Shown here: piece by piece, positions 36,193 to 62,041 of the stretch
Position numbering within the stretch: position 1 is the stretch's first letter
Layout of the letters: the number at the start of each line of letters is the position of its first letter
Assembly: GCF_006345805.1 (NCBI RefSeq)
Contig: NC_043003.1
Coordinates: 30,442,001-30,506,000 of the forward strand
Direction of reading: 5' to 3'
Source of the DNA: Octopus sinensis
Taxonomy: Eukaryota
DNA length: 64,000 bases
Program-made: the position numbers and the translations under genes
Notes under the pieces: model-generated
What the model was told of the DNA's origin: nothing
Databases searched by the model: none
The model's input: the letters and a program-made list of their open reading frames with translations, nothing else

Positions 36193-37269
36193 ATGGAAAA
36201 AAATGCAGAGCCTGAAACTATTGATTCCCTTACATATACAGAGGAAAATACAGAAGAGAAATCACATGATTTATGTGGGGAATTGTTAACAAAAAAGGAT
36301 TTAATTCGGCATCAGTCAATTCACTCAGTCTCAAAGCTGTATAACTGTGAAGTTTGTGGAAAGACATTTACAAGCAGTACTTTGTTGACTAGCCACAAAG
36401 ATATCCACAATGGAGAAAAATTATACCAATGTTACATGTGTGATGAAAAGTTTTCAACAAAGGACAATTTGTCGTCTCACACATGTATTCAAACAGCAGA
36501 AAGACCATACTGTTGTGATATCTGTGGTAAAACATTTTGTAGAAGTGGTCAGTTGTCTTCCCATAAATATATTCATTCAAGAGAGAGACCATACCATTGT
36601 GATATCTGTGGTCAAACATTTTCTAGAAGTGGTCATTTGATTAACCACAAACGCATCCACACAGGCGAAAGGCCATACAACTGTGATATTTGTGATAAAA
36701 AATTTTCTAGAATTAGTGAATTATCTTCCCACAAATGTATTCACTTGGGTGAAAGACAATATCGCTGTCATAGCTGTGATAAAATATTTTCTAACAGAAC
36801 TGATTTGTCTTCTCATAAACATATTCACTCAGGAGGACGAATATACCACTGTGATATCTGTGATACAACATTCTCTCAAAGTGGAAGTTTATCTCAACAT
36901 AAGCGTATTCATACAGGAGAGAAGCCATACCAGTGTGATATTTGTAAGAAAAAATTTTCTACTAGCAGTTATTTGTCAACCCACAAACGTACTCACACTG
37001 GTGAAAGACCCTACCGTTGTGATATCTGTGGTAAAACATTCACTCAAAGTGGGTGTTTATCTCAACACAAATATATTCATACAGGAGTAAGACCTTACCA
37101 TTGTGATATTTGTGGTAAAGCATTTTCTACAACTCGTAATTTAACTCGACACAAATGTATTCATACAAAAGAGAAAGCATACCACTGTGATATCTGTGAT
37201 GAAACATTTTCTACTAGGGGTCGTTTATCTTCCCACATACGTATTCATACAGGAGAAAGACCTTCATAA
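36193..37269 (+). CDS. Poly-C2H2 zinc-finger protein ZNF3, 358 aa, 11 fingers plus a degenerate first unit
   Basis: ATG at 36193 (MEKNAEPE) matches the ZNF4 and ZNF5 starts; same ORF length (1077 nt) as ZNF4. Confidence 0.93.
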   Translation: MEKNAEPETIDSLTYTEENTEEKSHDLCGELLTKKDLIRHQSIHSVSKLYNCEVCGKTFTSSTLLTSHKDIHNGEKLYQCYMCDEKFSTKDNLSSHTCIQTAERPYCCDICGKTFCRSGQLSSHKYIHSRERPYHCDICGQTFSRSGHLINHKRIHTGERPYNCDICDKKFSRISELSSHKCIHLGERQYRCHSCDKIFSNRTDLSSHKHIHSGGRIYHCDICDTTFSQSGSLSQHKRIHTGEKPYQCDICKKKFSTSSYLSTHKRTHTGERPYRCDICGKTFTQSGCLSQHKYIHTGVRPYHCDICGKAFSTTRNLTRHKCIHTKEKAYHCDICDETFSTRGRLSSHIRIHTGERPS

Positions 37270-37542
37270 CACTGAGATTTCTGTTATAAAGCATTGTTAC
37301 AAAATAGTAGTTTATTTTGATACAAATATATTTATTGAGGAGAAAGAAAGACCATACCGTTGTGATATCTGCAGTGAAACATTTTCTGGAAGTGGTAATT
37401 TTTACTCAGTATATACACACACACACACGCATAAGAAATAAACAATACTCATATATAAATATATTAATAATAATATGACAACAAAAGAATGAATGAGACC
37501 TTGATATTATGTAAATAGATGAATTTATCTATATATATATAA

Positions 37543-37908
37543 TATAGGACAATCAGGAAGTTGTCATAATAATACTCAGTTTCAAATACCGGAGTTAAAA
37601 GCTTCTAGGCATTTATCATCAGTTATTAAGACAAGAATGCTATGAAAAAAAAAACATTGAATAAAGGGAAGTTACTCTAATAGGCATGGAAATAACAGTA
37701 AAAGATATTAAATATTATATAAATACAACCACATACTCATAAAGATAGAACTCTTTGTTCATAAAATCTACATATGTACACATATATGTATGTATATTTT
37801 TTTTCATAGCGTTCTTTTCTTAATAACTAATGATAAATGCCTAGAAGCTTTTAGCTCTGGTATTTGAAACTCTGAGTATTATTATGACAACTTACTGATT
37901 GCCTTATA
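37543..37908. mobile_element. MITE with about 105-bp terminal inverted repeats in TA-repeat context
   Basis: caatcaggaagttgtcataataatactcag..ctatgaaaaaa (37543-37650) is inverse to ttttttcatagc..gattgcc (37797-37908). Confidence 0.85.
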
Positions 37909-38081
37909 TATATATATATATATATATGGTAAATTATTTTCTATAAGTAACAATATATTTTATAATAAATTTATTTCTTTAATGCATCAGTGTCATAACA
38001 ATGTTTTTATATCCTTTATTTTATACTGGCAGTTTAACTTACACCACATTTCATTATAAACAGTTTGACCTGGTGGATATA

Positions 38082-39960: not shown

Positions 39961-41670
39961 ATGTAGGTCATGTTCAGCAACAGATTTTTTAAGGTTGGTT
40001 TTGTGGAGGGTTTAGGTAAATTCTAGATTTTTTTTCACAAAATGTATAGTGGTGTACTTGTCTACTTGGCTAGTCAGCAATCCATTGCTGCATTTTGTTC
40101 TGATAAAATTGCAGGAAAGATCTCTAGCATAAAAGATGTTCTTTTCATCTCAAAGAAAAGCTTAATGTCTGTATACTTAAACATAGTAACATGCTCCCAA
40201 TTGGCATGTTTTGGTCATACATGCATACCTCTATACACAAAAGTTCAGTGGACAAAATGCCTTGTGGTACTTAGTAAGGTTTTAATTTTAAATGCTAGCG
40301 GTAAATGTTGCTTTTCATTCTCTAGCATGTGCAGGAGAGCTATCTTATTTGAAATATGATCTCATTTTTAAGAAACCAATATTTTATATATGTTTTGTTC
40401 CATCATCATTTATGCCTGTTTTCCGTACTGCCATGACTTGGATGGTTTTACCGGATCAAACAAGATGAAGGGCTACATTGAGCTACAAAGTCTGCTATTG
40501 TTCTGGCACTAGAGATGTTACCAACTGACAAGACAGAAAAAGGTCTCCACAACTGATTAAAATTGTAGTAGGGAGGAAGTAGCTTTATACTAGGTGACGA
40601 AAGGCTGAAGTATGGCAGGACAGAAACAGGTGTTTTGCTATAGAAGAGATACATAGTTACTCTACACCAAGCATCACCAAACTACAGCCTGTGAGGTCAG
40701 CTCATCTGGCCTGCTGCTGCACTGTACCTTTTATGTAAGTACCTGCAATGAGAATTCATTTGTCTCTGGTATGGCATCAATGTTTGGAACAACTTATGTC
40801 TGCCAACAAACATTTTCAAAAATAAAGTACGTGAAGTGAGCACATTGAATGAGGATGACTGATGAACACTTGAAAGCAATTCTCTTGATTGGATGCAGCA
40901 ATTCCAAAGTAAATATTGATGAAATCTTAAAAGCTAAACACCATTTTCACAAATTTCACAAACCTTTTTTGCTGCTTAGTTTGTGAGATTCCGATATGTG
41001 CGCACTGGGTGTGGTATAACTATCTTATTGCTAATGTTGCCTTCTTTAATGACTTTTTGGTAAATAAATATGCTGGTTGTCTTTATATTTTTGTGTATTC
41101 ACTGAATTGTATTGAACAAAACGGTTATGCAACCCACACTCATCATTCTTTGTTATCGGGCCCGCTGTGGAAAAAAGTTTGGTGACCCCTGCTCTACAGT
41201 ATATCAGACAGTGGGAGTAGCTGAAAATAAAATAAAAATGTGGGTGTTGAAAAGTCAGTGTATACTCCCAAGGCACAAGAATTGTGGGAGGAGAGTGACA
41301 GATGGTTAGAGATAAATGTAGTAAATGATGTGCTATGCATTTTATAATTTTTCACACACATTTAAGTATTTAGCAACAGTTATGTAAGTCACGAGAATTT
41401 AAAAGTATTTACAAAGAAACTTAAATCATTCACGAAGGGGAAAATGTGTACTCAAGTTGTCAAGTATAGTGAAAGAAGAGAAAGAAAGAGGAATATATCT
41501 AAATTGAGGGTAAACATAATGCAAAACATTTTTAAATTTTCGTTTTTGTATCTAGACACAAATTTTTTAAAATTCATCTAACACTTAGGTACAGCATCGT
41601 TTAATTTTCTTGCAACACCTTCAAATCACCCTTCAAAGATAAAACAGAAGTGCTTGGGAAAATTTTGCCA
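39961..41670 (+). repeat. Segmental-duplication paralog of about 54000-55040 plus 56851-56990
   Basis: Long colinear similarity, for example gatgttcttttcatctcaaagaaaagcttaatg and tttcgtttttgt.tctagacac; continues 44771-46030 versus 56991-57900. Confidence 0.85.
40668..41191 (+). mobile_element. Non-autonomous hAT (Charlie/SPIN-like) deletion derivative
   Basis: TIRs caagcatcaccaaac / gtttggtgacccctg; 8-bp TSD ctctacac (40660-40667) / ctctacag (41192-41199); MASMFGTTYVCQQTFS..MTDEHL C-terminal motif; empty site near 54700. Confidence 0.85.
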
Positions 41671-41744
41671 TAATAATAATAATAATAATAATAATTGTGT
41701 ACAGTGCTCAGGTGCACTACAACTCATCTAAAGTGTATATATAA

Positions 41745-44510
41745 TCAGGTGTAGTTTCGGCGGATTTCGGAAAGCATGAGGGCCTTAAAAGATGCAGTGT
41801 CATGGTAGTCAACAACTGACGCAGGCAGTTTATTCCATGCTTCAGCAACTCTGAGCGTGAAAAAATGTTTCCGAAAGTCATGAGAGCTGTATTGTTTTCT
41901 GACTTTGTAGGCATGTCCATGTGTGTTAGACACATGGAGATCAAAAAGGTGTTCAGTGTTGTTGTTGGTGAGGTGGTTGATAACTTTGTGGGTGTTTACC
42001 AAGTCCGTCGCCAGACGCCAGAGCTTCAGTGAATCCATGCCCAGGGAAACAAGGCGCTCAGAATATGGTAGGTGTCTGATGGAGGGTATGCGTTTGGTTG
42101 CACGTCTCTGGACAGATTCCAGGAGGTCAATGTTCTGTGCAAGATAGGGGTTCCAAACTGATGATGCAAATTCCAAGTGTGGTCGTACCATAGCTGTATA
42201 CAGTTTTAAATAGATGGCTGGAGAGCGGCTAACAAAAGACCTGCTGAGTGATGCCAAGACACCCTCGGCCTTCCTGACAATCTTAGAGATATGCTTTGTC
42301 CAACGCAAATCACTGCTGACAGTGATGCCTAGGTCACGCTCGCAAGAGGATTTCTTGATATCAGTGTTGTGGAGGGAGTATGTGAACGCAGGGTTTTTTC
42401 TCCCAAAATGCATGGTGGTACACTTGTCCACAGCCAGTTTCAGTTGCCAGTCTGTGATCCATTGCTGCATTGTGTCTAGGTCTGATTGCAGGAAAGAGTT
42501 GTAGACATCAGGATCTGTCCTCTTGATTTCAAGGTACAGCTTGATGTCGTCTGCATATTTCAATACTGTGGCATTCTTTAAATTGGCATCTATGTCGTTA
42601 ATGTATGCCACAAACAAGAGGGGACCAAGGACAGATCCCTGTGGTACACCCGATGACATCTCATATGGTGTAGAGTGCTGTCCTAGAACTGTGACAACCT
42701 CCTTTCGGCTGAGGATGAAGGATTTCAACCAGTTAAAAAGGTCATCCCCCACACCCATTGCAGAGAGTTTCACCATAAGCCTTTTGTGTGGCACAGAGTT
42801 GAAAGCCTTAGCAAAGTCAAGGTAGACAACATCCACCCATGAGCCACTGTCAGTAATCTGAGTAATGTCCTCAAGGAACTCGACAAGCTGGTCACTGCAG
42901 CTGGAGTTAGGGACAAATCCATATTGTGAGGGTCGGATGAGACTGTGAGAGCTCCAGAAGTTCCAGAGTGTTTCTCTGACACACGATTCCATCAGTTTTG
43001 CAATACAGCTAGTGAGACTGACTGGGCGATAGTTGACAGGTGATGTGCGGTCGCCCTTTTTGAACAGAGGAATGACACTGGCAGTTTTCCACTGCTCCGG
43101 AGTAGCACCATTGTTGAGACAGTACTGGAAGAAAATAGAAAGCTGGTGTAAAAGGAAGTGCCTGCCACGTTTGAGAAGCAGGTATGTAACTCCATCGAGA
43201 CCAGGGGAGGCATAGTTGCGCTTATTTTGAAGGTGACGTCGCAGCATTGCAGGCGTAAATTCCATAGTTGTTATGGAGTTTGCTGTTAGTGATGGTGAAG
43301 ATGGTACATCTTGACTTTCAACAGTGAATATGTTTGCATAGCACTCGGCAATGAGTTCTGCGCATTCCTTGGGGTCGTCAGTGATCTGGTTTGTGTGAGG
43401 GTTGCGAAGAGGGCCCACTGGAGAGTGAGGTCTCTGCTTTGAGTGCACATATTTCCAGAAAACCTTACTGTCAGGATTGGCTGCTATGCACTGTTCAAAT
43501 TCAAGCACTGCTTTTTTTGTTACTTGCTTGAGATGGTTGGAGGATTTATTCCGCTTCTTCCTGTTGGTGTCTGATTTATGCAACCTGTATTCCTGTTCAG
43601 CAGTCCGACGTTCCCTCCTGGCAAGTCGGACCGCTGAAGTTTCCCAAATTGCCCTTTTGGGGCGGTTCTTCTTTTTTTGTTTACGTGGCACTGATGCTGC
43701 ACATGCTGCCCATATTGAGTCCAGGATACTCTGGAGTATAGTATTCACATCTCCAGAGTTGTAGAATTCACGCCAGTTTGGGTGCTGTAGTTCAGTGTGG
43801 TACAGGTTCCAATCTGCTCTCTTCCAATCGAAGGAAGCAGATTGGAGATGGTTCAGGTTTTTGTTGCCCGCAAGAGCCAGATTGGCGATGATCATAGCAT
43901 GATCAGAGTCACCTAGAGGTTCCTCCGTAGTGCAATTGATAACCGCTTCAGGAGTTGTGGTGAAGAGCAGGTCCAAGGTGTTGTCGCCTCTTGTTGGAGA
44001 GGTGACTACTTGCGACCAGTTTGAGTCCAGCACAAGCTCAACAAAATCGTTTGCACTCTGTGGCCAATGGAAGGTCTCCCAATCGATCTCAGGATGATTG
44101 AAATCGCCTGCAATAAACACATAAGTGGCTGTTTTCCTGGCAGCAGCTCGGAGGACATTGCAAAGCTGTGTGTCCCGATGGTAACTTGGGGGACGATAAA
44201 CAACGCCAAGCAGGAGTGTTGACATGGTCATACGCACGTCACAGAAAAAAACTTCTTCTTGTGATTCGTTCAAATCGGCACAAGGAATTACCAAAAAATT
44301 TGAACGAACGTAGACCATCACACCACCACCACGGCGGTTAGTGCGGTCCTTACGGAAGAGGTTGTACCCTGTAATGTTGAAAACCCCATCACAGAGTAAG
44401 GAATGCGCCCATGTTTCCGTGACAGTGATGAAGTCAGGGTCAACACTTCTGACGTAGGCGTTGAACAAATGTATTTTGTTGCATAAACTGCGAGCATTTA
44501 AGGACAACAA
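41745..44510 (-). CDS. CR1 ORF2: AP endonuclease and reverse transcriptase, 921 aa from a TTG (frame open from 44594)
   Basis: LNARSL, VTETW, GGGV, GDFN, SDH; YRPVSL, YLDFAKAF, GVPQGSVLGPLLF, YADD; C-terminal RKHFFTLRVAEAWNKLP. Confidence 0.95.
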   Translation of the reverse strand: MLSLNARSLCNKIHLFNAYVRSVDPDFITVTETWAHSLLCDGVFNITGYNLFRKDRTNRRGGGVMVYVRSNFLVIPCADLNESQEEVFFCDVRMTMSTLLLGVVYRPPSYHRDTQLCNVLRAAARKTATYVFIAGDFNHPEIDWETFHWPQSANDFVELVLDSNWSQVVTSPTRGDNTLDLLFTTTPEAVINCTTEEPLGDSDHAMIIANLALAGNKNLNHLQSASFDWKRADWNLYHTELQHPNWREFYNSGDVNTILQSILDSIWAACAASVPRKQKKKNRPKRAIWETSAVRLARRERRTAEQEYRLHKSDTNRKKRNKSSNHLKQVTKKAVLEFEQCIAANPDSKVFWKYVHSKQRPHSPVGPLRNPHTNQITDDPKECAELIAECYANIFTVESQDVPSSPSLTANSITTMEFTPAMLRRHLQNKRNYASPGLDGVTYLLLKRGRHFLLHQLSIFFQYCLNNGATPEQWKTASVIPLFKKGDRTSPVNYRPVSLTSCIAKLMESCVRETLWNFWSSHSLIRPSQYGFVPNSSCSDQLVEFLEDITQITDSGSWVDVVYLDFAKAFNSVPHKRLMVKLSAMGVGDDLFNWLKSFILSRKEVVTVLGQHSTPYEMSSGVPQGSVLGPLLFVAYINDIDANLKNATVLKYADDIKLYLEIKRTDPDVYNSFLQSDLDTMQQWITDWQLKLAVDKCTTMHFGRKNPAFTYSLHNTDIKKSSCERDLGITVSSDLRWTKHISKIVRKAEGVLASLSRSFVSRSPAIYLKLYTAMVRPHLEFASSVWNPYLAQNIDLLESVQRRATKRIPSIRHLPYSERLVSLGMDSLKLWRLATDLVNTHKVINHLTNNNTEHLFDLHVSNTHGHAYKVRKQYSSHDFRKHFFTLRVAEAWNKLPASVVDYHDTASFKALMLSEIRRNYT

Positions 44511-44566
44511 TTTGTACCCTGCTCGCAGTTTATGATGGTGTGTAGAGGATGGCAGGTTGTTCTGGC

Positions 44567-44770
44567 TTAGTTTCCCTGAGTTGCTGTAGTCTTTTTAGTT
44601 ATTGTGGGTAGAGAGCACTCAGACCAGCTGGTATCTCTCTTCCACGTTTCAGCAGTCTTGACAAATCTCCAGATTTGTCCATCTTCCTGAAGACTGAAGC
44701 TTTCCTGTAGAGCTGAGTTCCTATTCAGGGAAGCCACTACACGTAGCTTCGGACGTACATCGGACGGTAA
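44567..44770 (-). CDS. C-terminal remnant of CR1 ORF1 (67 codons plus stop, ending TQGN*)
   Basis: My translation shows an open frame from the truncation point to TAA at 44569-44567; ORF1 identity is inferred from position. Confidence 0.6.
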   Translation of the reverse strand, partial: LPSDVRPKLRVVASLNRNSALQESFSLQEDGQIWRFVKTAETWKRDTSWSECSLPTITKKTTATQGN

Positions 44771-49476: not shown

Positions 49477-50553
49477 ATGGAAAAAAATGCAGAGCCTGAA
49501 ACTATTGATTCCCTTACATATACAGAGGAAAATACAGAAGAGAAATCACATGATTTATGTGGGGAATTATTAACAAAAAAGGATTTAATGCGGCATCAGT
49601 CAATTCACTCAGTCTCAAAGCTGTATAACTGTGAAGTTTGTGGAAAGACATTTACAAGCAGTACTTTGTTGACTAGCCACAAAGATATCCACAATGGAGA
49701 AAAATTATACCAATGTTACATGTGTGATGAAAAGTTTTCAACAAAGGACAATTTGTCATCTCACACATGTATTCAAACAGCAGAAAGACCATACTGTTGT
49801 GATATCTGTGGTAAAACATTTTGTAGAAGTGGTCAGTTGTCTTCCCATAAATATATTCATTCAAGGGAGAGACCATACCATTGTGATATCTGTGGTCAGA
49901 CATTTTCTAGAAGTGGTCATTTGATTAACCACAAACGCATTCACACAGACGAAAGGCCATACAACTGTGATATTTGTGGTAAAAAATTTTCTAGAATTAG
50001 TGAATTATCTTCCCACAAACGTATTCACTTGGGTGAAAGACAATATCGCTGTCATATCTGTGATAAAATATTTTCTAAAAGTACTGATTTGTCTTCTCAT
50101 AAACATATTCACTCAGGAGGACGAATATACCACTGTGATATCTGTGATACAACATTCTCTCAAGGCGGCAATTTATCTCGACATCAGCGCATTCATACAG
50201 GTGAGAAACCATACCAGTGTGATATTTGCAAGAAAAAGTTTTCCTCGAATGATTATTTGTCTGCCCACAAACGTACTCACACTGGTGAAAGACCCTACCA
50301 TTGTGATATCTGTGGCAAAACATTCACTCAAAGTGGATGTTTATCTCAACACAAGCATATTCATACAAGAGAAAGACAGTTCCATTGTGATATTTGTGGT
50401 AAAATGTTTTCTACGGATCATAATTTAAATCGACACAAATGTATTCGTACAGAAGAGAAAGCATACCACTGTGATATCTGTGATGAAACATTTTCGACTA
50501 GGGGTCGTTTATCTTCCCACATACGTATTCATACAGGAGAAAGACCATCATAA
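49477..50553 (+). CDS. Poly-C2H2 zinc-finger protein ZNF4, 358 aa, 11 fingers plus a degenerate first unit
   Basis: Close paralog of ZNF3. Confidence 0.94.
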   Translation: MEKNAEPETIDSLTYTEENTEEKSHDLCGELLTKKDLMRHQSIHSVSKLYNCEVCGKTFTSSTLLTSHKDIHNGEKLYQCYMCDEKFSTKDNLSSHTCIQTAERPYCCDICGKTFCRSGQLSSHKYIHSRERPYHCDICGQTFSRSGHLINHKRIHTDERPYNCDICGKKFSRISELSSHKRIHLGERQYRCHICDKIFSKSTDLSSHKHIHSGGRIYHCDICDTTFSQGGNLSRHQRIHTGEKPYQCDICKKKFSSNDYLSAHKRTHTGERPYHCDICGKTFTQSGCLSQHKHIHTRERQFHCDICGKMFSTDHNLNRHKCIRTEEKAYHCDICDETFSTRGRLSSHIRIHTGERPS

Positions 50554-52026
50554 CTTTGAGATTTCTGTTGTAAAGCATTTTGACACAAATATATTTACTG
50601 GAGAGAAAGAGAGACCATACCGTTGTGATATCCTCTGTGAAACATTTTCTGGAAGTGGTAGCTTTTACTCAGTATATATATATATATATATATATAATAA
50701 TAATAAATGTATTTCTTTAACACACCACTATCATAACAGTATTTTTATATTCTTTATTTCATACTGGCAATTTAATTTTGTCTGCATTACATTCATTACA
50801 TACACTGTTTGACCAGGTGAATATTTCATAGTTATTGTTACTGTTGATAACTCCTGTTTACCTAGACTTTGATGTTCCAGTCCTCCCTCAACCTGCAAGA
50901 ACATCCCTACCTGCTTTGTACACCTGCATTTCTACACATATCCTCTTATGTCGAACATAATAATATTCACTATTAAACTACACATAAATTTATGCTTTAT
51001 TGATCTTTAGGTTCATTAACTATAGACCATTCCTTCAAATTTAAACTTTGTGGCAACTCAGTATATCTTTACTATTTACCATCAAAAACTGAACTCTCAG
51101 TAACTTGGAGATGTAAGAAGAAATGTGTTACAGTATTATTAAAAAGAAAAATAAATAGAAAGAGATGTGACAGACTAAGAAATGTGTAGATAGACAGCAT
51201 CAATGAAGGGATAGAATTAATTAGTGATGTGTATGTAAGAATGCTATGAGATGGGACCAAATGGATTCCTATGATAGTTGACATAATCTGACCACATAAC
51301 TCACTACAGATATTACTTAATATCAATGTAGTTTTTGAATAACTTTGGAGTTGGCCATGTCACATTGGTGGCTAATAAAATTGTGAGGAGACCATATCTC
51401 TGGTTGTGTGAGACATCTTTTAACCATCCAGTCTATTGGCAAAAATATACAACTAAACTGGATGGTAAAAAGTCTAGTGTTAATGTGTTCTTGTGCAGGC
51501 AAGATGGCTATATGTTAGGAACTGCAACAGTTGGTCATTGTCATGTCATCTGTAGATAATTTTATGGGTACATTGTAAGGAGATGTATAGGTAGAATACT
51601 AGTGAACAAGATTGAAAGCAAATGACCTACAACACAACATCTACAACTGTTTATTTCATTAAATCAGTGGAATATTCAGAATATTTTAGTTCTCTTTGGA
51701 TAGATTACAAAATATCAAGGAAGAATATAGACAATTATAAGCTAATTCAATACATAGTAAGGCATATATCTCACCAGTGTTTTGATATGACAGTTATATT
51801 ATTGGTTTATATTAGAGGTAGTATAGCATGGAACTGGCATTGGGAGATGAGACATATCTAACTTTTTAATAAATGTATTACAATAACATTGTGTGTTAAC
51901 TCTATCTAGGTTTGTTATTCATGGAGTTGGTATTGTAATTGTTTCCATTCAACAGTTTCTCCAGTTTCATTGTGAACATTCTTGACAAAACATGCTAGTA
52001 TTATAGAAAATACTTCCGAAGCAAAA

Positions 52027-53200
52027 ATTGGGTCACCCCATAAACAATGCATTTTTTAAAATTCCTTTTTTTATTTCTCAAAATTAAGATACACAAAGCT
52101 CTTTTTTAATCTAAACTATACTCTCCTTTATTTTCTACAATGCTGTTCCATCTAGCTGGTAAACTTGAAAGGCTCCTCTTCCAAAATTCACTTGTCTATG
52201 ATGAAAAATACTCCTCTAGTATTGTTCTGACTTCGTTTACAGAATTCATATTTTTTTGTGTCCTGATGATTTTGAAGACTGGAATGAATGATAATCAAAT
52301 GGGGCAATGTTTGGCGAATATGGTGGGTGGGGCATCATTTCTCATTCAAACTGCTCCAGCCTTTGGAATGTAATCCTTGCTGTGGCCAAGCATTATCCTG
52401 ATGGAAGAACAATTTTCATCTTGAAATGAATGATGGCCATTTTACTTCTAGCACTGACTTAAGCCACTCTCAAGCTGCTCACAGTGGATCTCTTTACTTA
52501 TTGTTCAGTTTGGGTTTAAAAGTTCAAAGTGGACTAAACCTTTCATATTCCACCAAATATAACAATACTTTATGTGGGTGAAGACCTTCTTTAACCTAGG
52601 GTACCAGTGTTTCTCTTTTTCCTACCCACTGTCTTCAGCGCTTGACATTTTTATAGAGAACTCATTTCTTGTCATCAGTCACTATTCAGCCCAGAAAAGG
52701 TGCATTCATGAGACATGACAGCAAAGAAAAGCACACATTCACTCTCTGCATGCGATTAGACTTGGTAAGTTTGTGGGGAACCCATTGACCCAATTTGCTG
52801 AATTTTCCAATGGCATGTAGGTGTTGATGAATGATTGAATGACCAAATCCAAGGTTCTCTGCTAGTTCCTCAACAGTTAAGATGGGATTTTGTTCCAGCA
52901 GGGTTTGCAGGACATCCTTGTCGAGCTCTACAGATTTTCCTGGATGAGGTTCGTCTTCGTGGATGTAGTTTCTGGCTCGGAATTTCTGGAACCACCATAG
53001 ACATTGGCTCATGCTTATTGTCTGAACCCCATACACTGCATTAATATTATTCGCATTTTCTGTTGCGTTGTTGCATTTATTGAACTCATAAAGCAGAATA
53101 TGCTCCTTTGTCACTTCCATTACAGCTTTGAAAAAATAAATGCTTAAATCGAACTGCACTCTTCAAAACTTGCTCTAAGAATGAGTATCATGGCAAAATT
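52027..53200 (-). mobile_element. Degenerate mariner element
   Basis: HILLYEFNK HTH region, WFQKFR, GQWVPHKL and HQDNA motifs; one TIR-like end attgggtcacccataaacaatgc at 52027. Confidence 0.85.
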
Positions 53201-53236
53201 ACTACCTGGTAATACAAAAATTTAATACTCTCCATA

Positions 53237-53425
53237 TTGGAAAATAATATTTACTATGAGAAGATAAAACAATACAACCCACAGAAATCACTTAAAAACT
53301 TATCCTCCTTACTTCAAATACATGGAAAGGGTCTCACTAAACATGAAATAGACTATTTATCCAATTTTAAATACAGTCCTAGGCTATTCTACGGATTACC
53401 TAAAATACACAAAAATCCACATATT
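53237..53425 (+). mobile_element. Penelope-like element RT fragment
   Basis: PRLFYGLPKIHK motif. Confidence 0.65.
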
Positions 53426-55292
53426 TGTAAAGCCTGCAAAGTTTATCATGCTGACATGGGTTGGATTCTTCAACATGATCTGACAAACCAGAGGACTGCT
53501 TTGGCATTGTTTATGTGGCTGGAAACAGGCACATCAAGAATTGTTAAATTTCAGGAAGCATGTTCGAAAGATACATTATTCTCACAGATAATACCCAATG
53601 CAGATAGGTTATTCCATGATTTGACAATTCTGAGCATGAAAAAATTGTTTCTGAATGTAGTGGGTGCTATGCTGTTTTTCAATTTATAAGCATGTCCTCA
53701 GATGATAGAAGTATTGAATTCAAAAACGTTGTAAAAATGGTGGGTAGTCTTGTGGGCTTATATCAAGGAGGCAACAAGACAAGCTATGGTGCCTGACAGA
53801 AGGTAATCATCTGGTTGCAAGTCTCTGAACAGCTTCATGTAGATCAATATTCTGGACAAGAGATGCAAACTATAAGTGTGGACATAACTATTGAGAGCTG
53901 GTAAGCAGCTGACACAGGTCTCATTGAATGATACTAAGACACTTTCAGTCTCTTTGACGATTTTAGAAATGTGGTTTGTCCAACACAGATTATTGTCAAC
54001 AATATGAAGGTCAAGTTCAGCAACAGATTTATGGTTGGTTTTATGGAAGATGTAGATAAAACTCTAGATGTTTTCTTCACAAAATGTTGTGGTGTACTAG
54101 TCTACAGCCAAGTTGCATGGCTAATCAGCAACCCATTGCCACATTTTGTTAAGATGAAATTGCAGGAAAGACCTATAACATAAGGGATGTTCTTTTCATC
54201 TCAAAGAAAAGCTTAATGTTGTCTGTATACTTAAACATAGTAACATGCTCCCAGTTGGCATGTTTAGGTCATCTATGTATACCTCTATACACAAACAGTT
54301 TGAGGGATAAAATGCCTTGTGGTATTTAGTAAGGTCTTAATTTTAAATGCCAGAGGTAAATGTTGCTTTTCATTTTCTAGCATGTGCAGGAGAGCTTTCT
54401 TATTTGAAATATGATCTGATTTTTAAGAAACTAATATTTTATATATGTTTTGTTCCATCATCATTTAACGTCTGATTACCCTACTGGCATGATTTGGATA
54501 GTTTTACAGGATCAAACAAGATGAAGGACTGCATCAAGCTACAATGTCTGCTATGGTTCTGGCACTAGAGAAGTCACCAACTGACAAGACAGAAAAAGAA
54601 GTCTCTGCAACTGATTGAAGTTGTAGTCAAGAGGAAGTAGCTTTATTCTAGGAAATATGTTAAGACAGAAACAAGTATTTTGCTACAGAAGAAAAAGATA
54701 GTTACCCCACACTATATTTGAGGGTGACTAGCTGAAAATAAAGTAAAAATGTTGGTGTTGCAAAGTCAGGCTATACCCCAAGGTACAAGAAGTGTAGGAA
54801 AAGAGTGGCAGATGGTTAGACACAAGGGTAGAAATAAATGTAGTAAAAGATGAGGTATGCATTTTATAATTTTTCTCACATTTAAGTGTTTAGCAACAGT
54901 TATGTCACTCAGGAAAAGAAGCATGTACAAATGGAATAAACTCATTCATGAAGAGAAGCTGTGTACTCAAGTTCTTAAGTATAGTGAAAGAAATAAAAGA
55001 TAAATATATCTAAATGTAAAATATTTATAAAATTTTGTATGCTGGAGCTGGATGACAGTCACATATACACACTAAAACCGAGCTTTCGTAAATCTTTTTT
55101 TTTTCTCAGTGGACTCCTAGGTTTTCAATGATGGATATTCCAAACATGCAAAATATCATGTTTTCAAAATTTTAAATTCCCCCTTCCCATCCTAAAATTT
55201 TTTTAATTTTTAACTTTTTGCAAAATTTTTTTTTTTCAATCTAAAAAATACGGAGATTAACAATATGGCAAACAAAAACTTAATTAAATTTC

Positions 55293-55685
55293 AAATTTTG
55301 TATGAAAAACTCCAAATTTGATGCATAAACACTTGCCACCCAGCAGAAAAGGGTGCACGTGTGCAACAGTCTCCACAGCTCACTGCAAATGAATGACTGA
55401 AACAGCATGTTTTACATATCAGAGGTGTGTGGATCAATCTAGGAAGTATGTTAAAGATTTTAGTAGACATATGACTGAGAGTTATTTAATATTGTGTTTG
55501 CTTCTATGAGAATCGTTTACCTTTAAAGCGAAAAAACAAGACCGACATATACGAGTATGTAAAACATGCTGTTTCACTTTTGTTCATTTTCAATGAGCTG
55601 TAGAGATTGTTGCACACGCGCACCATTTTTTTGTTGGGTGGCGACTAGTGTGTGGATCAAATTTGGAGTTTTTCATATAAAATTT
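55293..55685. mobile_element. Nested MITE with about 125-bp TIRs
   Basis: aaattttgtatgaaaaactccaaatttg..aaacagcatgtttt is inverse to aaaacatgctgttt..caaatttggagtttttcatataaaattt. Confidence 0.8.
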
Positions 55686-55890
55686 GGTCAAGACTTCCAC
55701 CCAAACCATCCTTTTATTAAAATTTATTTTTAGACACAAACCCCACCTTTTCGGCTACGGGGAATACGGATCTGCAAAAAAATTGGCAAAAATCAGTATC
55801 TTTAACCCCCACCCTCCAACCCCATTTATTTCATCTTTCACTTTTTTCAGAAATTTTTTTTTAAATATGAGGCAAAATACGCAGATTATG

Positions 55891-56299
55891 GATCTTTTCG
55901 GTTTGAACGGCAGTTTTTAACATAATTTCTAGGTAACTAAAAAATTTTAAACTTCGTACACTGGTAGAATGTATTTATAAAACATCTTTTTCTCTTGGCT
56001 TTATTGAGAAAATTCTATAGTTTGTAAGATATTTGTTGTTTTTTTTCTTCAATTTCTGTAATTTCAACCAATCACTGACGTCTATTGAGGTAAAAAAAAA
56101 CATTCTGTGCCGTATGAATATGTCCCTCGTTTAAGAAACAGATTGAGTTTATTTACATTTGTGAAGAAAAAAAGATACCCTTCCCCCCAACTCTAACTAA
56201 CCCTAACCCTAAATTGAAATGCAATAGATCGATACTAAGGTCATAATTATGGGTGACAATTTCATATGACACCGCTAGAAAAAACTGCCGTTCAAACCG
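55891..56299. mobile_element. Nested MITE with a 19-bp perfect inverted repeat
   Basis: cggtttgaacggcagtttt (55899-55917) / aaaactgccgttcaaaccg (56281-56299); flanked by the direct repeat agattatg (55883-55890, 56300-56307). Confidence 0.8.
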
Positions 56300-57439
56300 A
56301 GATTATGATATGATTCTGAAAAAAATTTCCAAAAATTTTTGTAAAATGTTTTTTAAGATTTTTGTTTTTCTAAATATGCGGAAAAATACGGACATTATGA
56401 TTCGGACAAAAATTTCAAAACATTTCTGGAGTTACGGTTAGGGTTAGTGTTGGGGGAAAAGGTCAAAGAATTTTGGGGAGGGAATTTAACAATGTCAGTT
56501 TTTGACAAATTTCCGGAACTTCCGTATCCGAAAACGGAGGTTTTTTGGCAAAAATAAATAAACAAATTTGAGAGAAAATGGAGGGGAGGACGGGCGGAAG
56601 CCTTACCAAAATTTGAAATTAATTAATTTTTTGTTTGCCATATTGTTAATCTCCGTATATTTTCACATAGATTGTAAAAGAAAATTCGAAAAAAGTTAAA
56701 AATGAAAAAATTTGATGGGAGGAGGAATTAAAAATTTTGAAAACGTGATCTTTTGCATATTCGGAATCTCTGTCATCGAAAACCTTGGAATCCGCTGAGA
56801 AAAAAAAATTCCGAAAGGTCGAGGGGGAGGGTGACTCGTCCAGCTCCACCTTTCGTTTTTGTGTCTAGACACGACAAAATTTTTTTAATTTATCTCACAT
56901 TTTGGTGTAGCATTATTTAATTTTTTAGCAACACATTCAAATCACACTCAACTGTCATAAAAACAAGGGCACGGGAAAATTCCGTCACAAGATACCCTTC
57001 TAAAAAATAAGTCGAGATTGTCATGTGAAAAGTGCATCTGGAACTTTCAACGTCGCTACAAATAGCAGTCTCTTAGCATCGTTGAGGGTGTCTCAAAACA
57101 CAAAACTTCTATCGCACAGACTGGATTTGGTCTTCGGAATGAGACAGTACTTCCACGCTAACAGAAATTTTGGAAAACTCAGTTGGGTCCCAAAATAATG
57201 TACTACTATTACATCTTTCCAACCCACTTGTAATCTCAAGTTGGTTGCCAAACTCCAGTTCATACGCATGCTGTTTTTTCACTGACTTTTCTGACTTTAT
57301 TCATCTAGTCATCCATTTTCTCCACATTAGTATAACTGCACCATTATTCACTTCACTCAGTCCTTTCTGAAAAAGCCAACCCACTTCAATTGCTCATAGA
57401 TCTGAACAAAATTGTTGCTGCGAAACAAGATACTTATAA

Positions 57440-57900
57440 ACAACTCTTTATTGATAAGAGGTAGTTTTATTCCTATGCGATCAAGGACACTTCCGGTTTA
57501 TTCTTGACTTTGCTGTGTTCGTTTATATTGTAGATATATTATTATTTCTTTATACATATTTACATTGTATGAGTAATAATTAAGTACTGATTGTAATTAA
57601 CTTAAGACATAATTCATTAACCAGACTAAGACAGAGATATCCTGAATGAAGTAAAAAGTTCTGTCCAGTTTATCAATTTCAAGTTTGACCACTTCAATTG
57701 TCTCATCTTATAGCTACATTTTTATGTAAGCATGATTTATATTTAATTTACGTCATTTTATTGAAAGATCTCTTTTATATTTACATTTCTACTTCCTCCA
57801 CTACTTCTGTTTCCTACAGGATCCTACTTTCTTTTATTTACTTCTTTCTTGTGTATTTCATCTAAACACCGTAATTAATTCGAATTTCTGGAAATTACTA
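57440..57900 (+). promoter_or_regulatory. Conserved upstream module of ZNF5: donor-like GAG|GTAGTT at 57461 and ETS motif (57489-57496)
   Basis: Paralogous to the four other modules. Confidence 0.6.
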
Positions 57901-58399
57901 ATATTTACGGACGTAACCAAACAGCTTTTGCTAAACGGTGGCGGAACAAACATAGACACAAACACACATACTTTTCTGTACTTTGCAGCTATTGCACAAA
58001 TCGTTAGGCTTGCTTACTCAGTATTAACTGCAAAAATAAGCTCAAATTTTGGTAATGTGCTATACGTTCTGTCTCACTTTTAAATTGTATATATTATCAT
58101 CATTTTCTTTTAACGTCCACTTTTTTCAAAGCTTACATGGCTCACACAAAATGTGTTGAAGTAGATTTTATACGGCCGGATAGGTAATCTTTCAACATTT
58201 GGTGGTTAAATAAGTAAATTAAAGGGGAGATAATTAGGTTATCGTTCTTTTCATCGAAATCATTCTCCAAAATAGGTTCTCATTGTTTACTTACACTGAA
58301 ATATATTCTCCCATTCTTTACTTTCGAAATGGCACGTGGAAGACCAGCTGCACGGCAATTCATTGTTCCTAAATTTGAAGTCCTCAACCCTGAGTCAAT

Positions 58400-58775
58400 T
58401 TTGTAAATTAAGTAAAGCAGAAGACAAAATTCTTCAGTGGCTGGCACGTCGTCGACTAATTATGAATATGTAAATTTGGGAAAATTGTAATTGATTATGT
58501 GGCCTCACTACATGTGGTGACTGTATGAATGTAAAAACCTATGTCTGTAAGCTCTGTAAAAGGAAGAAATCAATTCGTCACTGTTCATTCTTCGAAAGAA
58601 GCCATATTTCATTCTACAAGTGTTGCTCATTTATTGTCGGGCACGCGATATGTCACAAGAAGATATTATGAATGAGTGTTCATTGACAACCGACTACTGC
58701 AGTAGATTTGTGTAATTTTTGCCGTGAAGTCTGTGATATATGACTTCAGCAAAACCCAGTGGAACCAAAGAATAC
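58400..58775 (+). mobile_element. Merlin-like transposase N-terminal fragment
   Basis: ILQWLARRRLI, KSIRHCSFFERSHIS and AVDLCNFCREVC resemble the Merlin SIR-x-SWF and VDWYNFCREVC motifs. Confidence 0.6.
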
Positions 58776-59094
58776 TTTTGTTAACTTTTTGTTGGTTCTA
58801 GCCAATGTTTACGTTGTTTAACAGTAAGTTGACTTATTTATCTCCCCTTCTTATTTCCCATTTCTTTTTTATCACTTTAATTACCAGATACAGAAAGATT
58901 ACCGGCCGGATATTATTGCTGTTGCAAACCATCTCTTTCCAAGCAGTCAAATTTCCCCAAGGCCAAACATGTCTTTCACGGAAGACGAAGTTCACTCATG
59001 TGAGAATGATGCCTGTTTATAATCACATAATCTCAAGAGCAGGAATGATATATAGACACTCACACACAAATATACAACTGGCTTCTTTCAGTTT

Positions 59095-59205
59095 CCATTC
59101 ACTTGCCCAAAGGGTTGTCTAATAGGAGTGAAACAGAGATGCCATGCAAAGGAAGTGAACCCAAGACCTTGTGAGTTTGAAAATAGACTTCTGAACCACA
59201 GCTAT
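59095..59205 (-). mobile_element. tRNA-derived SINE fragment
   Basis: Partial reverse-complement similarity to 27428-27560. Confidence 0.45.
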
Positions 59206-59561
59206 ATACTGTTTACTTTTTTCAATCCAAGTGTGAAGTAATCTGTTTTAGATCTATTATGGTGTAGATAGTAAGGAAGATGAGAACAAGTGATGTAGAC
59301 TGAGAGCAACAACCAAAGTTTGGGGTGAATGTAGTAATCAGTTTTGCAGTTATTGTGGGGTACATATGTATCTTTGGTGCCTTGGATCAAGTGGAGGATT
59401 AAATGATTTTTGAATGTTTTTAGACCAAACTATTGTGACCTGTAGTCATCTGTGTCTTTATGCCAAGATGCACTTCATTGTGTCTTTTGCCTTTACATAT
59501 ATGTTTTGGCTGTTTCTAGTTATTCCAATAATCTTTATGTTAATACTTCATTGTCCCTAAT

Positions 59562-59586
59562 GTATGATGTTGCATTTCTATTTCAG
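59562..59586 (+). promoter_or_regulatory. Putative splice acceptor of the ZNF5 coding exon (exon starts at 59587)
   Basis: gcatttctatttcag|gttatctgatg. Confidence 0.7.
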
Positions 59587-59959
59587 GTTATCTGATGACA
59601 TTGAAATAAAAATATTTCACTGATGAGAATCAACCTTTTAAGAATAGAAATAACTTAATCAATCTGAAGTCAGCCCATTTTGGCAACGCTTGATTTAATG
59701 GATGAGAAAAACTTGCTTGCAATTTAGATTGTGCAAAAATTTTTACTCTGTTATTTATTGAAAGATTCTATGTACAGATTAAACTTTGAAGATATGTCTT
59801 GTGCACCGGATATATTTCTTTAAGTGGAGCAGATTTAGCAATCTTTTGGTCATTGGATATTGGTTACTAGATTCAATCCTAATAAATCTACTTGAGATTC
59901 TTTAACAGCAAAAATATCATCACATTTTGTTAAAGATATAAGAAAAAAGATTAAAAGAT

Positions 59960-62041
59960 ATGGAAAAAAATGCAGAGCCTGAAACTATTGATTCCCCTAC
60001 TCATCACACAGAGGAAAATACAGAAGAGAAATTGCATTCATGTGATTCACGTGAGGAATTATTCACAAGAAAGGATTTAATTCAGCATCAGTCAATTCAC
60101 TCAGTCTCAAAGCTGTATAACTGTGAAGTTTGTGGAAAGACATTTACAAGCAGTACTTTGTTGACTAGCCACAAAGATATCCACAATGGAGAAAAATTAT
60201 ACCAATGTTACATGTGTGATGAAAAGTTTTCAACAAAGGACAATTTGTCATCTCACACATGTATTCAAACGGCAGAAAGACCATACCGCTGTGATATCTG
60301 TGGTAAAACATTTTGTAGAAGTGGTCAGTTATCTTCCCATAAATTTATTCATTCTGGAGAGAGACCATACCATTGTGATATCTGTGGTCAAACATTTTGT
60401 AGAAGTGGTCAATTGTCTTCCCATAAACATATTCATTCAAGGGAGAGACCATACCATTGTGATATCTGTGGTCTAACATTTTCTAGTAGTGGTCATTTGA
60501 TTAACCACAAACGCATCCACACTGAAGAAAGGCCATACAACTGTGATATTTGTGATAAAACATTTTCTAGAATTAGTGAATTATCTTCCCACAAACGTAT
60601 TCACATGGGTGAAAGACAATACCGCTGTCATATCTGTGACAAAATATTTTCTAACAGAACTGATTTGTCTTCTCATAAGCATATTCACTCAGGAGGACGA
60701 ATATACCACTGTGATATCTGTGATAAAACATTCTCTCAAAGAGGTATTTTATCTCAACATCAGCGCATTCATACAGGAGAGAAACCATACCAGTGTGATA
60801 TTTGCAATAAAAAATTTTCTTCAAATAGTAATTTGTCCTCCCACAAACGTACTCACACTGGCGAAAGACCCTACAGTTGTGATTTCTGTGGTAAAAGTTT
60901 CCCTCGACGTGCACATTTATTTCAACACAAGAATACGCACACAAGAGAAAAACATTTTCATTGTGATATTTGTAATAAAATGTTTTCTTCGGAACAGTAT
61001 TTCACTCGACACAAATGTATTCGTACAGAAGAGAAATCACATTCATCTGGAGAATTATTCGAAAGAAAGGATTTAATTCAGCATCAGTCAATTCACTCAG
61101 TCTCAAAGCTATATAACTGTGAAGTTTGTGGAAAGACATTTACAAGCAGTACTTTGTTGACTAGCCACAAAGATATCCACAATGGAGAAAAATTATACCA
61201 ATGTTACATGTGTGATGAAAAGTTTTCAACAAAGGACAATTTGTCATCTCACACATGTATTCAAACGGCAGAAAGACCATACCACTGTGATATCTGTGGT
61301 AAAACATTTTCTAGAAGTGGTCAGTTGTCTTCCCATAAATATATTCATTCAAGTGAGAGACCATACCATTGTGATATCTGTGGTCTAACATTTTCTAGTA
61401 GTGGTCATTTGATTAACCACAAACGCATCCACACTGAAGAAAGGCCATACAACTGTGATATTTGTGATAAAACATTTTCTAGAATTAGTGAATTATCTTC
61501 CCACAAACGTATTCACTTGGGTGAAAGACAATATCGCTGTCATATCTGTAATAAGATATTTTCTAAAAGAACTGATTTGTCTTCTCATAAACATACTCAC
61601 TCAGGAGGACGAATATACCACTGTGATATCTGTGATACAACATTCTCTCAAAGTGGAAGTTTGTCTCGACATCAGCGCATTCATACAGGAGAGAAGCCAT
61701 ACCAGTGTGATATTTGTAAGAAAAGATTTTCTACTAGCAGTTGTTTGTCTGCCCACAAACGTACTCACACTGGAGAAAGACCGTACTGTTGTGATATCTG
61801 TGGTAAAAGTTTCACTCAGAGTGCACATTTATTTCAACACAAGCATACTCATTCAGGAGAAAGACAGTTCCATTGTGATATTTGTGGTAAAATGTTTTCT
61901 ACAAATCAAAATTTAGCTCGACACAAATGTATTCGTACAGAAGAGAAAGCATACCACTGTGATATCTGTGATGAAACATTTTCGACTAGGGGTCGTTTAT
62001 CTTCGCACATACGTATTCATACAGGAGAAAGACCATCATAA
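59960..62041 (+). CDS. Poly-C2H2 zinc-finger protein ZNF5, 693 aa, 22 CxxC finger units (18 canonical), internally duplicated
   Basis: Two tandem copies of the ZNF3/4-type array in one ORF. Confidence 0.92.
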   Translation: MEKNAEPETIDSPTHHTEENTEEKLHSCDSREELFTRKDLIQHQSIHSVSKLYNCEVCGKTFTSSTLLTSHKDIHNGEKLYQCYMCDEKFSTKDNLSSHTCIQTAERPYRCDICGKTFCRSGQLSSHKFIHSGERPYHCDICGQTFCRSGQLSSHKHIHSRERPYHCDICGLTFSSSGHLINHKRIHTEERPYNCDICDKTFSRISELSSHKRIHMGERQYRCHICDKIFSNRTDLSSHKHIHSGGRIYHCDICDKTFSQRGILSQHQRIHTGEKPYQCDICNKKFSSNSNLSSHKRTHTGERPYSCDFCGKSFPRRAHLFQHKNTHTREKHFHCDICNKMFSSEQYFTRHKCIRTEEKSHSSGELFERKDLIQHQSIHSVSKLYNCEVCGKTFTSSTLLTSHKDIHNGEKLYQCYMCDEKFSTKDNLSSHTCIQTAERPYHCDICGKTFSRSGQLSSHKYIHSSERPYHCDICGLTFSSSGHLINHKRIHTEERPYNCDICDKTFSRISELSSHKRIHLGERQYRCHICNKIFSKRTDLSSHKHTHSGGRIYHCDICDTTFSQSGSLSRHQRIHTGEKPYQCDICKKRFSTSSCLSAHKRTHTGERPYCCDICGKSFTQSAHLFQHKHTHSGERQFHCDICGKMFSTNQNLARHKCIRTEEKAYHCDICDETFSTRGRLSSHIRIHTGERPS

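Follow-up and report, generated by a model that had tools for sequence, protein, structure and literature searches.

The locus and its genes

Five paralogous multi-finger genes lie inside 62 kb of octopus genome, within a window of 64,000 nucleotides (the whole stretch that was analysed; Table 1). The exact products of the cluster ORFs were placed on O. sinensis GCA_006345805.1 CM016865.1, and the other octopus record involved was O. vulgaris OX597820.1, in which the ZNF2 protein is identical. A gene with the exact ZNF3 product is recorded in O. sinensis GCA_006345805.1, a recorded gene range (49477-62041) begins at the ZNF4 ATG, and a 749-aa minus-strand gene model overlaps them, spanning the whole cluster. 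Consensus polishing of near-identical paralogs could overstate the identity among ZNF3, ZNF4 and ZNF5.

Table 1. Genes and sequence features of the cluster, by position in the window
Feature	Position	Strand	Equivalents	Remarks
ZNF1	635..1918	-		14 fingers, opposite strand; in-window paralog most distant from the rest
ZNF2	18307..19392	+		Older paralog, 12 intact fingers
ZNF3	36193..37269	+		Single-coding-exon C2H2 gene, 358 aa (ORF and finger parse)
ZNF4	49477..50553	+		ZNF3 paralog, 358 aa
ZNF5	59960..62041	+		693 aa, two arrays fused in frame; 693-aa product on record
ZNF5a	59960-61036	+		First array of ZNF5
ZNF5b	61037-62041	+		Second array of ZNF5
Extra 28-codon finger in ZNF5a	60284..60367	+		F3 duplicate, RSGQLSS (protein alignment)
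ZNF5 fusion junction	61024..61036	+		13-nt microhomology TACAGAAGAGAAA (T-E-E-K)
Putatively homogenised tract, ZNF3	36073..36843	+	ZNF4 ~49357-50127; ZNF5a ~59840-60703; ZNF5b 61037-61615	About -120 nt through F6; 97-100% identity among the copies (sliding identity)
F6-F10 block, ZNF3	36760..37179	+	50044-50463; 60620-61036; 61532-61951	Divergence of duplication age
Terminal finger F11 (TRGRLSS) and tail, ZNF3	37180..37266	+	50464-50550; 61952-62038; ZNF2 19303-19389	
Duplicated 5' noncoding flank, ZNF3	35706..36192	+	49031-49476; 59489-59959	
LINE insertion	41665..44768	-		Intact 921-aa endonuclease-reverse transcriptase ORF, within the ZNF3 duplication unit

ZNF3, ZNF4 and ZNF5 each have one coding exon and a short acidic N-terminus. 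In ZNF3, 11 aligned finger positions (F1-F11) follow a degenerate N-terminal finger, and all four zinc ligands are kept in 10 fingers, with F2 lacking one; the additional finger that precedes F1 is degenerate throughout ZNF3-5 and intact in ZNF1 and ZNF2. A regex parse found tandem C-X2-C-X12-H-X3-H fingers with TGEKP-like linkers, as in C2H2 poly-zinc-finger proteins (PF00096/PF13465), and Pfam zf-C2H2 matched 10 stretches in ZNF3 (E=2.4e-53) and 19 in ZNF5 (E=4.6e-100). Only C2H2 families were matched; there were zero Pfam matches to KRAB, SCAN, BTB or ZAD, KRAB (PF01352) being matched in none of the five ZNF ORFs, and ZNF3, ZNF4 and ZNF5 carry no recognisable effector domain. The recorded products start at the same ATG as the ORFs searched for KRAB. 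Thus, the locus is indeed a tandem poly-zinc-finger cluster without KRAB, as initially described, and this absence is expected, since KRAB is a vertebrate domain and the host is an octopus. In a homolog search with the whole ZNF3 protein, generic vertebrate and insect ZNFs dominated at no more than 55% identity, so that the search said nothing of orthologs; a search with the front block (aa 1-106) gave no relatives in a database apparently without these octopus proteins, and it carries little weight.

All the helix strings listed in the preliminary description occur exactly as written in the ORFs of ZNF3, ZNF4 and ZNF5. Common to the four arrays (ZNF3, ZNF4, ZNF5a and ZNF5b) are the helices of F1 (SSTLLTS), F2 (TKDNLSS), F3 (RSGQLSS) and F5 (RISELSS), and F4 reads RSGHLIN or SSGHLIN; those of F6-F10 differ among the arrays precisely as first listed. 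The F11 helix, TRGRLSS, is found in ZNF2, ZNF3, ZNF4 and ZNF5b, and ZNF5a is without F11. F2 ends in HTCIQ in all four arrays and has therefore lost its second zinc-binding His. F10 lost the same residue in ZNF4, ZNF5a and ZNF5b, where it ends in HKCIR, and is intact (HKCIH) in ZNF3 only. Given canonical C2H2 docking, the proteins are predicted to be sequence-specific DNA binders; the paralogs would then share an F1 plus F3-F5 sub-site and the F11 triplet, and differ at the F6-F9 sub-site.

The fusion junction of ZNF5 is probably explained by its microhomology. Set beside the linkers and N-termini of ZNF3, ZNF4 and ZNF5b, the junction sequence TACAGAAGAGAAA recurs both in the linker of F10 and in the unit's N-terminal region. 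ZNF5 would have originated by unequal exchange at these 13 nt, with two arrays joined in frame.

Divergence along the arrays

The four arrays are not equally similar along their length. Within the tract that runs from the 5' flank through F5/F6, the copies are 95-100% identical. Block distances between copies are 0-1.3% in F1-F2 and 2.4-5.6% in F3-F5, and reach 6-10.7% in F6-F8 and 10.7-23.6% in F9-F10. As for the surrounding DNA, mismatch in the 5' noncoding flank is 10-11% overall and 5-9% in the 120 nt adjoining the ATG, the 3' flank is diverged by 13-15%, and, in intergenic DNA, the ZNF3 and ZNF4 units match collinearly with 71-84% identity (16-29% diverged). Because the flanks have diverged by 10-15% and the intergenic DNA by 16-29%, F6-F10 stand at duplication-age divergence and F1-F5 are the exception. 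With flanks and intergenic DNA as the yardstick, the 5' half is unusually similar, and the 3' half is not unusually diverged.

Silent change follows the same course. Between copies, dS is 0.03-0.08 in the front block versus 0.15-0.29 in the back block, and synonymous-only variable columns number 5/128 and 16/96, respectively (p=0.002). In codon models, the branch-length scale of F1-F5 relative to F6-F10 was 0.18-0.26, a scale of 1 being rejected (p=1e-6 to 6e-5), so neutral divergence is 4-5 times lower in the front fingers. The ratio of amino-acid-variable to synonymous-only columns is equal in the two halves (12:5 in front, 44:16 at the back). Taken pair by pair, synonymous divergence in front (5-7%) lies only modestly below that of the 5' flank (10-13%). 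In short, neutral divergence in the tract lies below that of both adjacent segments (p<=6e-5) and flanks, as gene conversion would have it. F11 shows zero amino-acid changes across three arrays despite a dS of 0.06-0.18, which indicates purifying selection.

Comparison with ZNF2 gives a different picture. Here the front helices all differ, and three helices at the back (F7, F10 and F11) are identical. Likewise, dS against ZNF3-5 is above 1 for the N-terminus and for F1-F2 and is only 0.17-0.24 at F11; for ZNF2 and ZNF3, it falls from more than 1 (N-terminus, F1-F2) to 0.24 (F9-F10) and 0.17 (F11). In F9-F10, ZNF2 nests with ZNF3 (9.5% vs 11.9-23.6%), and ZNF4, ZNF5a and ZNF5b are farther from ZNF3; in F1-F2, ZNF2 is 32% distant. 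Distances, the dS gradient and runs of sites all indicate that different segments support different relationships. The front/back pattern is not a fixed constant-plus-variable architecture, as had been proposed, because the constant and variable halves reverse against ZNF2.

Runs tests followed the GENECONV logic of Sawyer 1989, as applied in PMC2604467. With all sites and ZNF2 added, concordant-site runs of 41-63 were found over codon columns 42-105 (p<=0.0006). Restricted to the four copies, the test has little sensitivity, since homogenisation across all of them leaves the tract without polymorphic sites; a Sawyer-type test of silent sites alone, which are few, was not significant. GC3 gave no clear mark of biased gene conversion. 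Conversion is read here from one genome, with ZNF3-5 seen in one assembly and an orthologous region obtained for ZNF2 only.

Selection, probable conversion and the history of the cluster

It is likely that the constant fingers are mainly a gene-conversion tract and that F6-F10 drifted neutrally after tandem duplication. Amino-acid change in F6-F10 is, as first claimed, concentrated in the recognition helices, where 21/35 codon columns vary, versus 23/105 in the scaffold (Fisher p=5e-5, odds ratio 5.3); in F1-F5, 1/35 helix columns varies. Helix dN/dS in F6-F10 is 0.96 (p=0.86 vs 1), and that of the scaffold is 0.23 (helix vs scaffold, p=2e-8), with a marked difference between the scaffolds of F6-F8 (0.09) and F9-F10 (0.46; p=2e-5). 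At contact positions -1, 2, 3 and 6, omega is 0.98-1.17 (p=0.60-0.95 vs 1). None of these helix and contact values differs from 1, and no partition of the codon models supports omega above 1 at helix or contact positions. The term "hypervariable block" is thus not justified for F6-F10, in which helix dN/dS does not exceed 1 and synonymous divergence is itself raised, a combination that the preliminary description had named in advance as counting against it. The contrast between constant front and variable back fares better in one respect. Front helix omega is 0.12-0.19 versus about 1 in back helices (LRT p≈0.02), a stronger constraint than homogenisation alone predicts, so selection also contributes in front; F6-F10, nevertheless, evolve at the neutral rate and not faster.

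The concentration of back-block changes in helices and the front/back difference in helix omega could also be read as adaptive, with F6-F10 under diversifying selection (for instance, in a transposon arms race) and F1-F5 a selectively fixed anchor. Remnants of LINE, mariner-like and Tc5/pogo-like TEs surround the cluster, and an omega near 1 may mask mixed positive and purifying selection. In octopus ZNFs in general, base-contacting residues vary most, and TE consensus sequences show an enrichment of the motifs predicted for ZNF ORFs (PMC10547256). Such selection is nonetheless unlikely here, as the positive selection at DNA-contacting residues that marks KRAB-ZFP-like TE surveillance was not detected; helix omega reaches 1.66-1.73 only when both halves are forced to share a single tree, and this apparent value of about 1.7 is a model artefact of the one-tree constraint. 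Moreover, synonymous divergence is up 4-5 fold in the same block, whose divergence does not exceed that of the noncoding flanks or the intergenic DNA; the helices conserved against ZNF2 are those at the back, and, in three arrays, F10 has lost a zinc ligand within an F9-F10 scaffold that is relaxed.

A related proposal is that homogenisation was selectively kept, conversion maintaining F1 and F3-F5 as a shared anchor for reading one half-site across the paralogs and the other half being free to explore new specificities. The sole hint in this direction is that front helices are modestly more constrained (p≈0.02), and the proposal is very doubtful; if true, the family would be a modular constant-plus-variable DNA-recognition system, perhaps against variants of one repeat family.

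A-to-I editing is extensive in cephalopods, and Liscovitch-Brauer and colleagues are said to have found, in 2017, that recoding sites constrain neighbouring sequence. Low synonymous divergence in the front block might therefore reflect selection on the nucleotide sequence rather than conversion, through RNA structure for editing or through a regulatory or antisense element lying within the block, to which the minus-strand 749-aa model could be related. This is highly improbable. The front segment folds a little more stably than shuffled controls (z=-2.36) and the back segment similarly (-1.62), without a meaningful difference, so structural constraint is unsupported; high identity continues into 120 nt of noncoding sequence before the ATG and declines gradually at either end, and thus resembles conversion tracts and not a discrete element; and the front dS of ZNF2 against the same block is saturated (>1), so the front sequence is not universally constrained. 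Equally improbable is an assembly or polishing artefact, in which cross-mapped paralog reads homogenised the consensus or the ZNF5 doublet was mis-joined: although ZNF3-5 come from one assembly and only O. sinensis yielded the exact products of ZNF3 and ZNF5, the adjoining 20 kb including ZNF2 show 99.3% agreement with O. vulgaris, which was assembled independently, identity changes smoothly along the copies, scattered differences persist inside the tract, and what joins the two arrays of ZNF5 is an exact microhomology in frame and not a gap or repeat collapse.

If conversion and drift are the main processes, a unit of ~12 kb would have been duplicated in tandem long before the O. sinensis / O. 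vulgaris split. Ectopic gene conversion would then have repeatedly overwritten ~0.8 kb, extending from ~120 nt ahead of the ATG as far as F5/F6, to judge by how synonymous and noncoding divergence are distributed, and the 3' half would have retained duplication-age divergence. The scaffold of F6-F8 is strongly conserved, and the helix residues there would have drifted at the neutral rate; that of F9-F10 is relaxed too, with the F10 zinc ligand lost in three of the four arrays, and F11 was probably maintained by purifying selection. The ZNF4 unit lacks the LINE insertion at the corresponding site (56981/56989), so the insertion is younger than the duplication.

Relation to known systems

Albertin and colleagues reportedly described a lineage-specific C2H2 zinc-finger expansion in octopus in 2015. 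ZNF3, ZNF4 and ZNF5 are tandem paralogs within this expansion, and the cluster is ordinary. It shares the octopus genome, single-exon many-finger C2H2 arrays, tandem paralogs and the lack of a vertebrate-type effector with the expansion documented by Holzinger et al. 2025 (PMC12513265), and differs in nothing of kind. The ZNF5 fusion and the mosaic history are local details for which no published description was found; the cluster raises no new question and serves as a worked example of the expansion, with a 12-kb tandem duplication, conversion, finger duplication, zinc-ligand decay and in-frame array fusion.

Vertebrate KRAB-ZFP clusters and cyprinid FiNZ-ZNFs resemble the octopus cluster in tandem duplication, finger gain and loss between paralogs, variation focused on DNA-contacting helix residues and paralog gene conversion as a known complication (Emerson & Thomas 2009, PMC2604467; Wells et al. 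2023, PMC10547256). In contrast to them, the octopus cluster has no KRAB or FiNZ domain, its contact-residue dN/dS is not above 1, and it is known here from sequence, so that TE binding or repression is hypothetical. KRAB-free TE surveillance by octopus ZNFs was previously proposed from genome-wide prediction (Wells et al. 2023, PMC10547256); for this cluster, it is a hypothetical role and not a new idea.

With the concerted evolution of tandem families, the cluster shares synonymous divergence that is lower in the tract than in the flanks, segment-specific trees, and a tract of <1 kb in which identity declines gradually towards the edges; it differs in that conversion is inferred from a single genome and has no clear GC-bias mark. 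A conserved block plus a hypervariable block in protein alignments of tandem ZNF clusters should be treated with caution, as this can arise via gene conversion. If the mosaic is overlooked, positive selection is then signalled falsely; in this cluster, imposing a single tree on both halves raised helix omega from 0.96 to about 1.7.

Genes, arrays and age of the cluster

An ORF and finger parse of the window gives five C2H2 poly-zinc-finger ORFs, ZNF1-ZNF5, the last of which carries two arrays. Pfam assigns these ORFs exclusively to C2H2-type families and gives no match to KRAB, SCAN, BTB or ZAD domains in them, which agrees with the preliminary description of the cluster as KRAB-less. Absence of KRAB is the expectation for zinc-finger genes outside vertebrates. 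The cluster is part of the well-documented octopus C2H2 expansion, reportedly first described by Albertin and colleagues in 2015. It is typical of that expansion and of local interest, and its history combines tandem duplication with gene conversion, the gain and the decay of fingers, and an array fusion. In O. bimaculoides, 1,453 C2H2 sequences have been counted (Holzinger et al. 2025, PMC12513265).

Features of the window (aa, residues of the ZNF5 product)
Feature	Position	Strand	Description
ZNF1	635-1918	-	14 fingers
Tc5/pogo-like	10860-11827	+	two adjacent transposase ORF fragments (HTH_Tnp_Tc5, DDE_1)
ZNF2	18307-19392	+	12 fingers
O. vulgaris segment	26297/26298		~1.16 kb missing here, present at L005 17951-19113
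Candidate splice acceptor	36136-36144		ctttaacag
ZNF3	36193-37269	+	C2H2 poly-zinc-finger ORF
LINE	41665-44768	-	intact 921-aa endonuclease and reverse-transcriptase ORF, (TAA)n-type tail
~143-149 bp repeat	46112-46787, 47772-48193		two mutually inverted arrays, 2.8-4.6 copies each
ZNF4	49477-50553	+	C2H2 poly-zinc-finger ORF
Mariner/Mos1-type	52686-53159	-	transposase N-terminal HTH fragment (PF17906)
ZNF5	59960-62041	+	one frame, two arrays
ZNF5a	aa 1-359		additional F3 copy, terminal finger absent
ZNF5 junction	61024-61036		13-nt microhomology (T-E-E-K)
ZNF5b	aa 360-693		
RT-like repeat	63174-63960		

The exact ZNF2, ZNF3 and ZNF5 products are recorded in the O. sinensis assembly GCA_006345805.1 on chromosome CM016865.1, where the window begins at 30,442,001, and the ZNF2 product also in O. 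vulgaris (GCA_951406725). The database gene range for the 693-aa ZNF5 product, 49477-62041, begins exactly at the ZNF4 ATG; thus, the annotation merges ZNF4 and ZNF5 into a single multi-product gene, suggestive of read-through or common transcripts. The candidate acceptor near ZNF3 lies about 50 nt 5′ of the ATG, inside the conserved proximal flank; it hints that a non-coding 5′ exon may lie further upstream. A minus-strand gene model with a 749-aa product spans the whole cluster and extends past each of the database loci L003, L004, L006 and L007, so ZNF2-5 would be antisense within its introns.

Individual fingers have been both gained and lost. An 84-nt duplication added one finger to ZNF5a, while a finger 5′ of F1 that is intact in ZNF1 and ZNF2 is degenerate in ZNF3-5. 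The second zinc-binding histidine is missing from F2 in all four arrays of ZNF3, ZNF4 and ZNF5 (...HTCIQ) and from F10 in ZNF4, ZNF5a and ZNF5b (...HKCIR). The junction sequence of ZNF5, TACAGAAGAGAAA, is found again both in the linker of F10 and within the unit's N-terminal region; this points to unequal exchange at this microhomology as the event that fused the two arrays in frame.

Divergence and selection along the arrays

The recognition-helix strings given in the preliminary description are correct throughout when checked against the ORFs, and amino-acid change in F6-F10 is indeed focused on the helices (21 of 35 helix versus 23 of 105 scaffold columns vary, p=5e-5); in F1-F5, 1 of 35 helix columns varies. 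Its interpretation of this pattern is only partly supported. Mismatch is 10-11% in the duplicated 5′ flank of the units, with 5-9% for the 120 nt adjoining the ATG, and 13-15% in the 3′ flank; the intergenic DNA of the ZNF3 unit aligns collinearly with that of the ZNF4 unit for ~12 kb, with 71-84% identity. Against this background, the back block (F6-F10) has the divergence of the duplication age, and the front (F1-F5) is the exception. By sliding identity, the tract of exceptional similarity runs from about -120 nt to F6 and tapers on both sides, as would be expected from its sequence pattern if repeated ectopic gene conversion between copies had kept it alike.

Divergence and omega among the four arrays
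Fingers	Divergence	Helix omega	Scaffold omega	Remarks
F1-F2	0-1.3%			
F3-F5	2.4-5.6%			
F6-F8	6-10.7%	0.80	0.09	
F9-F10	10.7-23.6%	1.30	0.46	helix vs 1, p=0.42
F11	1.1-3.4%			amino-acid changes 0; dS 0.06-0.18

An assembly artefact behind the similarity of ZNF3-5 is a remote possibility, as these genes were compared in one assembly only, although the neighbouring region matches O. vulgaris: window 8294-28278 is 99.3% identical to its ortholog (49 mismatches in 18 kb), and ZNF2 differs at 3 of 1086 nt with an identical protein. The measured divergence between the two species is 0.27%, and paralog divergences are 10-100 times higher; thus, the copies are much older than the species split.

Diversifying selection on F6-F10, the block called hypervariable in the preliminary description, finds no positive support. 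Pairwise Nei-Gojobori dS among the four arrays is 0.03-0.08 in F1-F5 and 0.15-0.29 in F6-F10, where overall dN/dS is 0.34-0.64. Columns with synonymous variation only number 5 of 128 in front versus 16 of 96 in back (p=0.002), and both halves have the same proportion of amino-acid-variable to synonymous-only columns (12:5 and 44:16). Under a purpose-written GY94-type codon likelihood model, fitted to four taxa on all three topologies with F3x4 frequencies, omega in F6-F10 is 0.96 for helices (vs 1, p=0.86), 0.98-1.17 for contact positions -1, 2, 3 and 6 (vs 1, p=0.60-0.95) and 0.23 for the scaffold (helix vs scaffold, p=2e-8), although an omega near 1 may blend positive and purifying selection. 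The claimed contrast of constant front and variable back holds insofar as front helices are more constrained (omega 0.12-0.19, p≈0.02), but not in a back omega above 1. Scaffold omega differs between F6-F8 and F9-F10 (p=2e-5), and F9-F10 would reflect relaxed constraint rather than adaptive change. Front branch lengths are 0.18-0.26 of those in back (equality rejected, p=1e-6 to 6e-5); when they are forced to be equal, back-helix omega climbs to 1.66-1.73, so that any apparent positive selection would be spurious, produced by leaving the mosaic out of account. Gene conversion has already been flagged as a confounder for such analyses (Emerson & Thomas 2009, PMC2604467).

Mosaic history with ZNF2

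Nor is a constant scaffold with a variable block a fixed architecture, since the halves reverse when ZNF2 is compared, and the split thus depends on the pair chosen. All five front helices of ZNF2 differ from those of the four arrays, whereas its F7, F10 and F11 helices are those of ZNF3. Between ZNF2 and ZNF3, dS is above 1 in the N-terminus and F1-F2, ~0.5 in F3-F8, 0.24 in F9-F10 and 0.17 in F11, and the 5′ noncoding flank is merely ~20-30% diverged. In F9-F10, ZNF3 is nearer to ZNF2 (9.5%) than to ZNF4, ZNF5a or ZNF5b. A Sawyer-type runs test including ZNF2 finds 41-63 consecutive concordant sites in codon columns 42-105 (p<=0.0006), with shorter runs within F10 that pair ZNF2 with ZNF3 and ZNF4 with ZNF5b; on silent sites alone, the test has low power. 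Nucleotide-level constraint on the front block, such as an RNA-editing structure, is unlikely, because front and back fold similarly (z=-2.36 and -1.62), the similar tract reaches into noncoding DNA and the ZNF2 front block is synonymously saturated.

Function and transposon surroundings

The window ZNFs are functional genes and not pseudogenes; their ORFs are still intact at 10-20% neutral divergence, the F6-F8 scaffold is strongly conserved and F11 is invariant. The proteins are presumably sequence-specific DNA binders, with a predicted sub-site common to the arrays (F1, F3-F5, F11) and a differing part (F6-F9); from their sequence, F2, and F10 in three arrays, may be spacers or non-functional for want of a zinc ligand. 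The KRAB-free transposon surveillance proposed earlier is plausible for octopus ZNFs in general and conjectural for these genes. The idea is not new: TE consensus sequences show an enrichment of the motifs predicted for octopus ZNFs, with experimental validation still required (Wells et al. 2023, PMC10547256), and Holzinger et al. regard such targeting as an open question (PMC12513265).

The window itself is eukaryotic, ~35% GC and transposon-rich. The LINE sits in the ZNF3 duplication unit, and the homologous ZNF4-unit site (56981/56989) is uninterrupted; its insertion postdates the unit duplication, and the element may be young and potentially active. The Tc5/pogo-like fragments are kept in the orthologous O. 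vulgaris region (L005 2586-3518), where they are annotated as genes, and the mariner/Mos1-type fragment lies between ZNF4 and ZNF5. The ~1.16-kb O. vulgaris segment, part of which has 77% identity to the RT-like repeat, probably marks a TE insertion by which the two species differ. The ~143-149 bp repeat arrays contain G-runs and A-runs and spurious minus-strand ORFs.
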